Source: Calcarisporiella thermophila CBS 279.70 (taxonomy: Eukaryota; Fungi; Calcarisporiellomycota). Taken from it: a stretch of DNA of 64,000 bases. Positions 3,323-9,744 of the stretch are shown here, piece by piece. The stretch lies in NCBI RefSeq assembly GCF_041956535.1, contig NW_027192195.1, forward strand, positions 1,199,347 through 1,263,346, written 5' to 3'. The position numbers were made by a program, and so were the translations under genes. Below the pieces are notes generated by a model. That model saw only the letters and a program-made list of their open reading frames with translations, did no database searches and was not told the origin of the DNA. Positions within the stretch are counted from its first letter, which is position 1. Each line of letters opens with the position of its first letter.

Positions 3323-4700
3323 ACGTTACATATATTGGCTATATTGAGGATTTCTTAGTTTTATTGAATATTGAGCTAATTTTTTTTTATTAACAGTCGT
3401 AGTTTTATCTGAGGACAATCGAGAGCTTAAGGATAGCAAGAGGATTGTCGAGATAGACCTTATTAGACTTATATCCGACACAACAGTGGTGGTTCTACTG
3501 AGAAACTGTAAACTCCTATCGTCCCCGAATTCAGTTAATTCATTTTGATATATCGATACTTTTCGTTTTGTTGTTACTGTTGTTTCGTTTAATAACGCCC
3601 GAAAATGACTATTAACAACGAAGGAAGATCATGGGTACGACCAAAATTCTTTCATGGTGACATGAACGAGGATCCAGTTGAATGGATCGAAGAACTGGAT
3701 AATATCCGTCGAGTTAATCATTTGACTGATGAAACTCTCATCGATATAGCTGGATATTACTGCAGAGATAAGGCATCTACTTGGTATCGTACGAATGAAA
3801 CCAAGTTTGCGATCTATGAGGATTTTGAGGGGTGCATCATGTCCAAATTTAGGAGAGGCGAATTGAGCGCTGGCGCCAGGAGTCAGATGGCCGTTGTCAG
3901 GAGCTAATTTGGTGGAGAAGTTGGTACATTCGGTTAAAAAGCTGATCGATAGAGTTGGGGTTTCTGACGAGAGTGAAAAGATCAGATACCTGATAAGAGC
4001 GTTGAAGCCGATATATCAAACAAATTTCAGACGAGCGAAACCAGATATATCCGAGGTGATAGAACTTGTCCAAGTTGAGGAAAAGGCTTTCGAACAGGGT
4101 AAATTCGAAGCACCGCAGTCAAAAGGTTCAAGGAGAATAGCAAGCCAAGAGGCATTCGAGAAAGGCAACGCCAAGTGAAAGGAAGATATCTCAGCAGCAC
4201 CCAATCGAGGACATATCAAGCAAGGAAACTTAGCGAAATCTCAATCTGTCGATGAAAAACTTGGTTGGTTGGTCCACGAATTTAGGAAGCTAAAAATCAA
4301 CCTCTTGAATGGAAACAGACGACTACAATCAATGATCTGCTTTGCGTGCCAGAAAGAAGAACACATTAGGCGCAACTGTCTTTACAACATGGATGGGCAA
4401 GGCAGTACTCAAGGCGAATCTGGGAGTCGGGATAAGAGTAGCGGCGTCTCAGGAGGGAGGTTCGGGCGCCCGCATAAGTTCAAATCCTCCAGTGGCCAGG
4501 GTGAATTGCATGGAGACAACGGGAATTGGAAAGGAGATTGAAGCAGAAAGGAATAAAGAGGTGGATGGAGAAGAAGCAAGTGACAATGAGTATGATGAGG
4601 GAGTTTTTCAATACAGAAGAAAGGTTGGACGAAGAAGTAGCAGCATTAAGGTTGGCTAAACTGTTGTTGGTGGAGAAGCGGAAGTCGGTTGGGAGAGACC
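3323..4700 (+). mobile_element. Degenerate Ty3/Gypsy LTR retrotransposon 5' part (partial LTR, PBS, frameshifted gag)
   Basis: LTR end ..CAACA at 3485; PBS TGGTGGTTCTACTGAGA at 3487 (resembles a tRNA-Val 3' end); gag pieces PKFFHGDMNEDPVEWI, GYYCRDKASTWY and zinc knuckle CFACQKEEHIRRNC; left boundary approximate. Confidence 0.8.
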
Positions 4701-5430
4701 TACCGTCTCATTCGACTTGCCGACGGCACTCCAACTCCTGACGCCAACGCCCAATTCGCCTCTCTGTCCTAAATTTAGACAGGAAGCACTCCTGGAACTC
4801 TCCATAGGCGTTAAAATCTGGCTTCGTTCATGCGATACCCCGTAGATTCCTCATCTCTAGAGTAATACCCGGACATCTCGATGACAGTTTCTTCCATCCG
4901 ACGATTTACTCTGCGGATATTAACCAGTTCATTGATGCATTCTACTGGGTCCTCGTTTATGTCACCGTAGAAGTACTCTGGGCGCACCCATCTTCTTCCT
5001 TCGTCGTTAACAGTCATTTTCAAGCGTAATTAAACGAAACAATAACAAAAATACAAAATAAATAATAACGGTATAACGAAATAAACAAACTTAATCCGGA
5101 GACGATAGGTTACAGTTTCTCAGTGGAACCACCACTGTTGTGTCGAATATAAGGCTAATAAGGTCTATCCTGACGATCCTCTAGCTGCCCCTAAGCTATT
5201 GATCGTACTTCCCTTAGGAGGGCTAATAAACGACACAAGGTGGTGGATAAGTATTCCGGTTCTATCTCCAAAACAAAATAACACACGTATACAAAAACGT
5301 CTCCCTTTTATACTAAATATAACGTATCACAAAAGTCAATAAAATATAGTAAGTATACCAATAAAATCATCCCAACAAATATATCAATCTAATATCATAT
5401 AGAAAAATAAGCCACCACACTCTCTGTACA
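4700..5430 (-). mobile_element. Second Ty3/Gypsy relic of the same family, inverted (LTR ~5430-5136, PBS, gag start)
   Basis: ORF 4811-5023 (MTVNDEGRRWVRPEYFYGDINEDPVE) is homologous to 3605-3907; PBS TGGTGGTTCCACTGAGA from 5134; TGTACA..CAACA candidate LTR termini. Confidence 0.8.
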
Positions 5431-5939: not shown

Positions 5940-6810
5940 TGGTTCGATCCTGCTCCGAGGTTGGAGTTACCTCCAATAATTTGGGGAATGTCTGGACCTC
6001 CGTCCACAAGTGATCCACCCTCCCAAAATACCTTGCGCTACGATGTTGAATTTACGTAGAGCGAGTTATTACTAACTCGACATATCCTGCTCACGACCCG
6101 AAGTGTAACCGCTGTAGCACTTCGAGGGACACATTCTGTCACACTTTTTCGAATGTCCCGAACTAACGCCAGCGTGGCAGTGGGAGGAAAGGTGTATCAA
6201 CACCATCGCAGACTCCCAGAATACTATGCTGACTGCTCATAATCCAATACTAGGAGGCTTATCTGATGCTCCTTGAAGTGTTATGCATGTGGCCCAAATG
6301 ACTTTCGACTCATAATATAGAGTCGAAAGTCATTTGGGCCACATGGCAAATACATCGGGATCGTATTGCCTTCTATTATGAAAACATCAGGCCTTCATCC
6401 GAAACCATCATCAACCGTGCACTGGATATTGAGGAGGCTATGGGAGCCGAGTAAATATGAGCACGAAGAAAATGACAAATTGAACAGTTTTGAAGCAAGT
6501 GGTGCAAATGGGGTGCGGTTAAAGAAGGGGCTATCCGAGCGGTACAGGTACTGGTATGAAGCAGCAGACTCTATTTCTACTCCTCCTAACCCCTCTTCCT
6601 CTTTCACCCTTCACTACATTTCCTGATTTCCAGAGTTAGTTGGGTTTTACCACCCCACTTCCTATATCGTCATGTCCACCGTGCCACCCCGAACTCCTGA
6701 ACCGCCTTAATTCTTAACTTTTCTTTCATTTTATTCCTTTCACTTGTGTAGCTATTGTGCTTTATTGGGGAGCTTCTCAAACAAAATAGACTCACTAATG
6801 ATAAAAAAAT
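5940..6810 (+). mobile_element. Older, heavily degenerate L1/Tx1-like LINE 3' fragment related to 1426-2431
   Basis: Translation through stops and frameshifts gives WGNVW..PKYLALR..RVITN..CNRC..DTFCH.FFECP..W, then VIWATWQIHRDRI..SKWCK, colinear with the young element; pyrimidine-rich 3' UTR and short A-run near 6803. Confidence 0.7.
6286..6345. repeat. Perfect 26-bp inverted repeat with 8-nt loop
   Basis: CATGTGGCCCAAATGACTTTCGACTC-ATAATATA-GAGTCGAAAGTCATTTGGGCCACATG. Confidence 0.95.
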
Positions 6811-6875
6811 ACATGGATTCCGATAAGAAGAAACAATTCTGTAAAAACCAGATTATATCAGATTCTCTCCATCAA

Positions 6876-6988
6876 TTTGTTTAACTTTTCTTGTCGAGTT
6901 TACAAAAGGACCAAGAGCAATCGTTAAACTAATAAAGGAAATTCTTGTCTTGGTCCTTTTGTAAACTCGACAAGAAAAGTTAAACAAA
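6876..6988. repeat. Perfect 41-bp inverted repeat with 31-nt spacer (MITE-like or fold-back)
   Basis: 6876-6916 is the exact reverse complement of 6948-6988. Confidence 0.9.
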
Positions 6989-6997
6989 AATATAGAA

Positions 6998-7187
6998 CGG
7001 CGAAAGGCTTTGACTGAATCCTACGGTTCGCATACACGGTATTGTAGGGAAATTACCTCTATCCTCAACGAGAATGGCTATGTACGAATTCAGCAGAGCA
7101 TATTCGGCATCAGGGTGGATGCCTGCTTGCATAAGTAGTAATTCCTCTTAACGATATTCGTAATTTACAACGGATAAGTGGATAAAC
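6998..7187 (+). pseudogene. VapD/Cas2-like nuclease pseudogene, copy A (5' and 3' truncated)
   Basis: RRKALTESYGSHTRYCREITSILNENGYVRIQQSIF, frameshift, RHQGGCLLA*VVIPLNDIRNLQ. Confidence 0.6.
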
Positions 7188-7500
7188 GAGCATATCAACT
7201 CCACGAACAAATGGAGCAAAACCCATATACACTGCGTCCTGAATAGATACTAGAACGTTTAAAAGATGAGGCTCTCCGTTTGGAGCCTGGCCGTTTATCC
7301 ATTGTAAATTACGAATATTGTTACCACTTGTGCAAGCAGACATCCACCCTGATGCCGATATGCTCTGCTGAATTCGTACAAAGCCATAATCGTTGAGTAT
7401 AGAAGCAATTTCCCTATAATACCTTGTATGCGAGCCGTAGGATTCAGTTAAAGCCCTAGGTCATATTGGATTATCCAATGTCCAACACTAGCAAGATCTT
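7188..7500 (-). pseudogene. VapD/Cas2-like nuclease pseudogene, copy B (inverted relative to copy A)
   Basis: GHWIIQYDL, frameshift, ALTESYGSHTRYYREIASILNDYGFVRIQQSI, frameshift, RHQGGCLLAQV, deletion, NNIRNLQWING; fits the VapD pattern hhh[FY]DL-x4-L-x3-YG-x(5-6)-Y-x2-I-x3-L-x3-GF-x3-Q-x-S. Confidence 0.65.
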
Positions 7501-9744
7501 CTCTACACAGCTTACATATTGTTATTTCTATGTATATGCAAAAAATGATACTAGTATGAAACCACGTTGAGCTTGAATCCTCACAGAATTTATCCTTGGT
7601 TTATATACGGCGAATACAATATTTATTATCATTAGATTAAAGCATGAGAACGAATGAATTTCTATCGCACACAAAGAGCATAAATCAAACTTAGAGATTA
7701 TTCTAAATTCGTGACCACAATGACTCAGGATGGGGTGTGAGTTATCCTGTCCAAACATTCAAGCGATATGCCTTTGTCTAAAGAGAGATTAGAGCGATAG
7801 TGGGTTGCTATGTAGCACTCTAATGGTCACAACGATTTGTTTAATGTTTTTAACAGCTTTGGGTTGTTATGAATTTTAATCAGTTTGGTTATAGTTATTT
7901 ACGTCTCCTTTGTTTCCTATCTGACCTCAATTGGGTTTTTCATGAACCCACATCAATTAGATCAGGCTTTATTGCAGTTTATTGAGGACAATGTATAGGT
8001 TATGGGGGGCGTAGACCTTGTAGTTACTTGATTGATATCAATTACTACCTTGTTGTTTTATCTATCTCATCTTTGAACACCAATGAGAGTTATTCTCCTT
8101 TGTTCACCATCCTATTTAAACTCTTTGGTTTATTTTAATGTTCCACACCAATTCCCTGAATTAGAATGATAAATATTTTATTTTTAGCGAGGTCCGGACA
8201 CCCCTCCACACAAATCTCCTTTCACCCGTAACAATGCAGCACAAACATCCAAGGTAACAATAGACCAATGCTGGTATTTTCTTATGGATAGAGTGCCGCA
8301 TCGCCGCCGCCCTTTAGCAGACGGGTAATAGGGGGTTCTCTCAGGCCTCAATGGCTATCAAAAGGGTAGTAAAATGCAATAATAGTAAGTAAACTCCATG
8401 TGGGAAAGGTCGGGAGAAGCGCCTTAATGGTCCTGATATTGAATTTGGCCCTTCCCATTTCCTTTGGATGTCATTTCAATTAGACTTTAAAATTCTTGCA
8501 TCTCAAGCAGAAATAATAAAAACGCCTCGGCTTTTTTAAAGGCGAGACGGTTCGGTGATATGGGGGCTTCGGAGCCAGTTTGCTAGATAACGGGCTCAGC
8601 CTCCATTGACGATGCGGCACAAGGGCATGAGAAGACTTCACGGCTCAAGTGGCCCCCACCATATTGCAATTGTCAAATTAAAATGGCCACCAACGGAGAC
8701 CGCAAATTGAAACCAAAATGGATCCAATATACGAGACACGATAAGGATCACATAGTTTCGTTCAACTTTCCATATTACTCAGGATTATTATAAAAACTGT
8801 AGAGTCGAAATTTAGTCTGAAGATCTCTCTAAAAGCAGACTATCAGGAGAAAAGGGCCGAGGCACGCGCTGTTTAGACTTCAAATGGGTAATCTACATTT
8901 GACTGAATTCACACTGCCACATTTGTTATCCTCTGTTTGCTGTAATTTTATGGAGTTAAGGAGTCGGAGATTTCGGCTGTTCTAGTCCAACTTGGTTTAG
9001 AGGGATTTTGAATGACGGAGATCAACAGATCCATCTAGAAAGTACTCTTATAAGAGATAAACAGCACACAAATCTAGCAATACTTTCCCCGTGCAGTCCG
9101 CCACAAGTGTGACGGATCGGCACCTCCCCCGATCATCCTAGCTTAATTCAATACAAACACGAACGATACTCCGCTAGAGAAACGAGAGGCGAGATGATAA
9201 CATCATCCAATATATATATTCCTGCGTCGAAAATTCATATGGACGTTATTGCCTCTCCAGTCCATTTTTTCTATACCATCTCAGTATGGTTCTAGAAGAG
9301 GTTAGAAAGAGTGGCCCTTGGATAAAGATCTATATGATGAAGTTAGGTAAACACTATGGTAATGGGTGGTCTTGTAGATGCTGGAAAAAGAGGGTAAGTC
9401 ACTATTAGTAACCTTTTGATTTTGATTTTTTTTTTGGGGGGGGGGGGACGACTTTCTATAGCACGGCCAAGCTTGCCTATGGATGTCAAGGTTTTAACCA
9501 AACGAGGGTTACTTAATTGCGTTATTTTTTGTATACGTTTCTCATCTGTGGAGGGGTCCTCTTAAAATTGAGAGCATTCCATATCAACCGACACACTAGA
9601 AAAACATTTTAGTATTTTCCCACATTAAATAGGAAAAACCACAAGGAGAGCTTGAAAAAAACAAAAATGTCCATCAAAGGGAAATGATAAAAAGTGGCAA
9701 AGTAGAGTAGAACAGATTAAAATATTCTCAAAAAGCTGATATAC

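Follow-up and report, generated by a model that had tools for sequence, protein, structure and literature searches.

A disabled, rearranged gene copy in the fungus Calcarisporiella thermophila points to a divergent VapD-like nuclease family with a predicted binding partner

Positions 6999-7517 of a 64-kb stretch of genomic DNA from Calcarisporiella thermophila (the window; contig C5:1199347-1263346 of a 28-Mb assembly) contained two inverted copies of one small coding sequence, with differing damage. The segment is what remains of a fungal VapD-like nuclease gene, in a copy that is dead and rearranged and has lost its partner gene. In the same genome intact members of this family were found, each paired with a second gene. 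We consider it very probable that the window holds a dead VapD-like relic, and a toxin/antidote-like module is the likeliest role of the living nuclease-partner pairs. On its own the window copy is unremarkable genomic debris; its worth lies in pointing to the family. The original prediction for this DNA concerned the relic and its possible paralogues; the pairing of the nuclease with a partner gene is a new finding that goes beyond it.

The inverted repeat was made up of three pairs of arms, 7006-7103 with 7358-7455 (98 nt, 90% identity), 7104-7141 with 7321-7358 (92%) and 7149-7177 with 7295-7323 (93%). When aligned with gaps the arms covered 161 nt at 90.7% identity. The lesions of both copies were read by gapped alignment to the closest intact paralogue, which lies on contig C2 (Table 1). 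In the minus-strand copy we found a stop at codon 2 (position 7514), one inserted base (7506) and deletions of 7, 2, 7 and 3 nt, five indels in all; the HMM match to the family within this copy was located at C5:1206525-1206833. The plus-strand copy carried a 1-nt deletion and a stop at codon 66 (7132). It is joined to the 3' end of the minus copy, whose middle third it duplicates, and the 117-nt "loop" of the fold-back (7178-7294) is therefore simply codons 81-120 of the minus copy. Both halves are disabled by stops and frameshifts, and the window copy is dead as a gene. Inverted pseudogene copies with different lesions had been predicted from the letters of the sequence, and the two sets of lesions did differ in the alignment to the C2 paralogue. 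The peptide pieces quoted at that time were recovered by six-frame translation on the minus strand, in shifting frames, and also on the plus strand. The interval proposed then, 6998-7500, does hold the relic, but its end was 17 nt short.

Table 1. Features of the window locus (positions in the window) and locations of the intact paralogues (contig and approximate position).
Feature	Position	Strand	Basis
Minus copy, near-full-length pseudogene of a 121-codon VapD-like gene	7177-7517	-	CDS nt 1-359, 83% identity to C2 paralogue
Plus copy, inverted partial duplicate of the VapD-like gene	6999-7176	+	CDS nt 62-240 (codons 21-80), alignment to C2 paralogue
Right fold-back arm, a minus-copy segment complementary to the plus copy	7295-7455	-	Inverted-repeat search, gapped alignment
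Remnant of the ~500-nt intergenic (shared promoter) region, the divergent spacer between nuclease and partner	7518-7969	-	Alignment to locus L042
Downstream flank common to the C2 (and C3) loci	6145-6846	-	Window 6846-6145 against L042 4916-5609, 77%
113-nt fold-back with perfect 41-nt arms	6876-6988	.	87-90% identity to the middle of the VapD-like palindrome on C32
Intact intronless 121-codon ORFs	C2 ~217 kb; C18 ~7.5 kb; C34 ~225, 229, 237 kb; C110		

Window 7187-7969 aligned to L042 4855-4038 at 79%. The homology upstream of the window copy ended just short of the expected start of the partner gene, and no trace of the partner protein was detected in the window by tblastn with E values up to 1. 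The downstream flank is held in common with the C2/C3 loci, so that the window locus is a segmental paralogue of these; relative to them, ~330 nt of inverted material has been inserted after the gene in the window.

A length of ~450 nt and long inverted arms are also what a MITE-like non-autonomous transposon would present, with the arms being non-coding terminal inverted repeats (TIRs), and the original prediction had itself named a non-coding TIR as one outcome that would speak against it. Both arms, however, aligned codon for codon to the coding sequence of the intact paralogues, the other genomic matches were gene copies and not 450-nt elements, the intact units had no TIRs, and no target-site duplication was present. 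The arms are thus coding-derived, and on these grounds the MITE or TIR transposon was rejected as almost certainly wrong. The unit of ~2 kb formed by nuclease and partner was likewise rejected as a transposon, because TIRs were absent and the similarity ended close to the gene boundaries.

To place the family we used profile searches. A profile made from the six intact paralogues matched VapD of Haemophilus influenzae over its whole length in the PDB (E 7e-6), and all five matches obtained were VapD. With an 11-member profile six VapD chains in the PDB were matched at E 3.7e-6 to 4e-3, followed by Cas2 at E ~0.3. The NCBIfam VapD model NF041506 was matched by 11 of 11 members (best E 3.8e-6), at scores far under its curated cut-off (18.5 bits for the first member against 100); the Pfam model PF09827 also stayed under its cut-off (14-22.9 bits against 23.8). 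Single sequences matched weakly, Cas2 in Pfam at E ~0.01, which is below threshold, and VapD in the PDB at E 0.02. Pieces of the window searched against Pfam gave Cas2 as the only match, again sub-threshold (E 0.056). A six-frame scan of the whole genome with PF09827 returned no match, the members having diverged too far for this model to pick them up in six-frame searches. The top neighbours found with a protein language model were VapD families or clusters.

The residues Asp19, Ser54 and Asp105 were invariant. Asp19 and Ser54, present in all 11 full-length members, aligned with the catalytic Asp7 and Ser43 of H. influenzae VapD (6zn8_A); the roles of Asp7 in the H. influenzae and Helicobacter pylori proteins and of Ser43 have been described (PMC11980593). 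As the members scored below the curated cut-offs while the reverse profile search was significant, we concluded that these proteins form a diverged eukaryotic branch within the VapD family and, by the curated thresholds, are not an equivalog.

An AlphaFold (AF2) model of the nuclease was obtained from a 19-sequence alignment with a pLDDT of 91.2 and a pTM of 0.84 (an alignment of 6 sequences gave a pLDDT of 38). The top 10 PDB matches to this model in Foldseek were all VapD, with a probability of 0.99-1.00. In VIA-align, comparison with VapD of H. influenzae, H. pylori and Campylobacter jejuni resulted in Z scores of 10.6, 9.6, 9.5 and 9.3 at an rmsd of 2.5-2.6 Å over 74-85 residues, the best Z corresponding to 2.6 Å over 82 residues. 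Against Cas2 the Z score was 7-8. The predicted fold is ferredoxin-like, beta-alpha-beta-beta-alpha-beta, and closest to the solved VapD structures. Cas2 as the closest match was rejected, as it ranked below every VapD in both the profile and the structure searches. The VapD/Cas2 homology that had been proposed for the relic thus holds on sequence profile, predicted structure and catalytic residues, with VapD nearer than Cas2. Among the checks proposed together with it, the structure search favoured VapD over Cas2, while the profile check was divided: PF09827 remained below cut-off, the VapD profile was matched under its cut-off as well, and the VapD chains of the PDB were matched significantly.

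Searching the genome we found ~16 VapD-like copies, six of them intact, two with a single TGA and ~eight fragments; intact paralogues, as had been predicted, do exist. The intact copies were 61-73% identical in protein. For the pairs of paralogues with estimable dS the dN/dS was 0.05-0.3, dS being mostly saturated, and third codon positions held 911 of the 1631 differences among the paralogues. By these substitution patterns the intact paralogues are shown to be old genes under purifying selection. The last 17 kb of contig C34 (C34:225000-241882; L034, L040, L041) consisted of an array of VapD-like/partner units, in which three nuclease genes are intact, several others are fragments and the partner gene is present in five or more copies; stretches reading as N interrupt the array.

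None of the six intact copies was called by the genome annotators, and no intact paralogue was present in the protein collections searched. A word-index protein search with an intact paralogue gave no match, the same search with the family alignment returned only three of its own sequences, and metagenome locus scans gave no match. The only annotated VapD-like model of the genome was P0002 (VTP21DRAFT_1498, 79 aa; L013, C107:1-2149). This model sits on a copy with an in-frame TGA and is without ~40 residues of the family alignment at that place.

Every well-preserved nuclease copy with readable flanking sequence lay head-to-head with a conserved, intron-containing partner gene ~500 nt away; several stretches beside copies on C34 and C18 read as N. 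Similarity between the copies extended ~1.65 kb upstream of the nuclease gene and stopped no more than ~15 nt after the nuclease stop codon; on the other side, the similarity between units ended ~100 nt past the partner stop. On the partner strand the codon periodicity was strong (0.08-0.15 differences per site, compared with 0.41), and at least eight copies showed conserved peptide blocks or exons, between which lie short introns with GT donor sites. A protein search with the contiguous ORF of the C3 copy returned three annotated, spliced partner products, P0021, P0022 and P0023, of 218, 231 and 208 aa, all of which are named "uncharacterized". Partner exons searched singly gave no Pfam family, and for P0021-P0023 no relatives were found in Pfam, PDB, Atlas or PADLOC. 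On L042, P0022 occupies 4006-2961 on the minus strand and the start codon of the nuclease gene lies at 4507 of the plus strand, hence the two genes stand head-to-head with a spacer of 500 nt. Genome-wide we counted 11 occurrences of the last exon of the partner; most of them lay as far from a nuclease copy as the pairing would predict, or belonged to tandem units. The middle region of the partner is basic and could bind nucleic acid.

The arrangement on contig C18 (L037, C18:1-10000) differed in its spacing. The first exon of the partner was located ~490 nt from the intact nuclease gene and the last exon ~7 kb away (C18:15110-15298), the DNA between them reading as N and the model P0023 starting after this gap. 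The gap between the exons probably marks a large insertion in the first intron of the partner.

The same divergent pairing was seen outside C. thermophila at three of the five foreign loci that were read, in Rhizophagus clarus, in Funneliformis caledonium and on the metagenome contig L050. At the R. irregularis locus and on contig L049, the other two, it was not recognisable. From gene order and alignment the pairing is shown to be conserved across two fungal phyla.

We predicted the complex of P0022 with the C2 nuclease and obtained a score of 0.76, the best of three controls reaching 0.30. The same mark was reached in calibration by 51 of 78 solved complexes, by 2 of 108 mismatched pairs and also by 7 of 44 blind neighbouring pairs, and the score is to be read as model confidence. 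The prediction runs agreed in at least 48% of contacts, and the pLDDT of the partner was at least 79. The confident interface was predicted between partner residues 33-113 and nuclease residues 6-11, 42-47, 58-78, 115 and 118. On the side of the partner this is the N-terminal helical part, which includes the exon most conserved between the phyla, and on the side of the nuclease the contacts fall on the conserved extension at the N terminus, where helix 1 ends, in the loop that follows strand 3 and on helix 2. Catalytic residues were absent from the confident predicted contacts. The model supports binding of the partner to the helical face of the nuclease.

In such a pair a tightly linked binder would hold the nuclease in a harmless state, much as a type II antitoxin does its toxin, and genetic conflict would be the setting in which the unit acts, as a selfish toxin/antidote, in allorecognition or in defence. 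Nuclease activity, toxicity and neutralisation by the partner are inferred properties of the pair. A role in genetic conflict fits the patchy distribution, the many pseudogenes, the clustering of copies and their position in repeat-rich DNA.

The family could also be a regulated nuclease, acting in defence against viruses or transposons or in RNA processing, with the neighbouring gene as a cofactor or as an unrelated gene that shares the promoter. For bacterial VapD the in vivo targets are unknown and half of the vapD genes stand alone (PMC11980593), which would agree with such a role, as would the predicted interface that spares the catalytic residues and the basic, potentially nucleic acid-binding middle region of the partner. 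The patchiness, the numerous pseudogenes and the presence of arrays close to contig ends and within transposon-rich DNA, on the other hand, fit conflict better than housekeeping, and the pairing is conserved across phyla with binding predicted. We therefore hold a regulated nuclease to be a real but clearly less probable explanation than the toxin/antidote-like module.

Eukaryotic toxin-antidote selfish genes, such as the spore killers of fungi, are multi-copy, lineage-restricted and pseudogene-rich, lie in repeat-rich DNA and have their two functions tightly linked. In those traits the VapD-like family resembles, by analogy, selfish genes of the spore-killer type. The known eukaryotic toxin-antidote genes use proteins unrelated to this family.

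A profile search of 1.84 billion representatives resulted in only 18 matches. They comprised fragments or mis-modelled genes of R. clarus, R. irregularis and F. caledonium, a fragment from C. thermophila and a few unlabelled metagenome proteins, one of which had been named "VapD" automatically by the JGI pipeline. The three Glomeromycotina loci that were read are pseudogenes, and one metagenome contig carried an intact 121-aa gene with the partner pairing alongside. Whether fungal homologues were already catalogued had been left undecided by the original prediction: one metagenome member bears the automatic VapD name, but the intact fungal genes are unannotated, and a literature search found no publication on them.

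The best non-fungal matches were two longer proteins at E ~6e-4, and no close bacterial relative was found among the 1.84 billion representatives. P0017 (L051:710-1711), the nearest non-fungal relative, has 233 aa, with a VapD-like domain and an acidic C-terminal extension. Its gene follows directly after one of 99 aa and precedes genes for ParA, ParB and a sortase on a bacterial plasmid-like contig. The 99-aa gene and that of P0017 probably form a toxin-antitoxin pair of bacteria, belonging to a divergent branch of VapD.

The original prediction had taken the family as perhaps gained horizontally, for example from endobacteria. Recent acquisition from a bacterium, for example an endosymbiont, would account for a gene without introns whose fold and family are otherwise prokaryotic and whose nearest non-fungal relative resides on a plasmid-like bacterial contig with ParA/ParB. 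Against this, a search of that size gave nothing non-fungal better than E ~6e-4, and the lack of a close bacterial relative makes a recent transfer unlikely. The gene furthermore lies on megabase fungal contigs beside an intron-bearing partner, occurs in Calcarisporiellomycota and in Glomeromycotina in the same order with that partner, and shows saturated dS between paralogues. We consequently regard a recent transfer as very improbable, and as a recent gain the proposal was not supported. Since the gene and its intron-bearing partner are common to Glomeromycotina, any transfer would have to be ancient; a horizontal origin, if there was one, was ancient.

Two further VapD-like fold-backs were detected in the genome. 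One, at C32:45034-45454 (L045:5035-5455), was arranged tail-to-tail with arms of ~170 nt at 84-100% identity. The other, at C34:232214-232761 (L040:4215-4762), was head-to-head and had 157-nt arms at 98%. Palindromic rearrangement hence recurs in this gene family (window, C32, C34). Homology between the small hairpin at 6876-6988 and the central part of the C32 palindrome shows that the structures in the window and on C32 have a common past, and the one on C34 stands apart. Within the same transposon pile, window 3566-5056 formed a long imperfect inverted repeat, with 243-nt arms at 77% that are ~1 kb apart. All long local inverted repeats of the 64-kb window were confined to 3.5-7.5 kb.

In some animals inverted-repeat pseudogenes suppress selfish genes. 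The window fold-back could similarly be a functional hairpin-RNA locus, whose dsRNA or small RNAs would silence the VapD-like paralogues. If transcribed, it is predicted to fold very stably (-279 kcal/mol, z -27.5); it shares an exact match of 28 nt with the intact C2 paralogue, and the C32 and C34 (~232 kb) fold-backs would add two more structures of this kind. The other five intact paralogues, though, share exact matches of only 11-16 nt with it, local fold-backs are frequent across this transposon pile generally, and the window and C32 structures, having their centre sequence in common, were not independent events. We judged the hairpin-RNA locus to be improbable, and a small-RNA role of the window fold-back is possible but unsupported. 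Equally doubtful in our view is the wider scenario in which a chromosomal toxin/antidote two-gene unit, made of a bacterial VapD nuclease and a binder specific to eukaryotes, spreads in early-diverging fungi and the fold-back pseudogenes in the window, on C32 and on C34 (~232 kb) are hairpin-RNA suppressors by which the nuclease family is silenced.

For comparison with characterised systems we used the bacterial VapXD of H. influenzae (6zn8/6zi0), HP0315 of H. pylori (3ui3) and VapD-VapW of C. jejuni (9kan). The fungal family shares with these the size of the core and the predicted ferredoxin-like fold (Z 9.3-10.6), the catalytic Asp that ends strand 1 and the Ser after strand 2, the conserved Trp after helix 2, the C-terminal D-F/V-T motif and a tightly linked small binding partner, in the fungal case a predicted binder. 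It differs from them in being encoded by a eukaryote, in having ~12 additional conserved residues at the N terminus and a conserved C-terminal tail rich in Gly and Pro, and in scoring under the curated family cut-offs. The fungal partner has no detectable relation to VapX, VapY or VapW. In contrast to the bacterial partners it is longer (208-231 aa), contains introns, is divergent to the nuclease gene and not in an operon with it, and its predicted contact is on the helical face and not in the catalytic cleft. With Cas2 (PF09827) the family has the superfamily and the fold in common, as well as weak profile matches to strand 1, helix 1 and strand 2. It is more distant from Cas2 than from VapD (profile E ~0.3 against 3.7e-6; Z 7-8 against 9.3-10.6), and in a fungal genome there is no CRISPR or Cas1 setting for it.

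VapD and Cas2 are generally seen as proteins of prokaryotes. A recent census of VapD makes no mention of eukaryotic members (PMC11980593). The family described here is, by its profiles and its predicted structure, a divergent VapD branch that is under selection in a fungus, where it has gone unannotated. Its genes stand beside a new partner gene whose product is predicted to bind the nuclease, and arbuscular mycorrhizal fungi have the same two genes as a unit. If the unit is a true toxin/antidote, it would be a rare case of bacterial-type toxin-antitoxin logic run from a eukaryotic chromosome, and beside VapX, VapY and VapW there would be a fourth class of VapD partner, unrelated to those three. 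The unit would then also give experimental access to genetic conflict, incompatibility or defence in fungi of the Mucoromycota grade.
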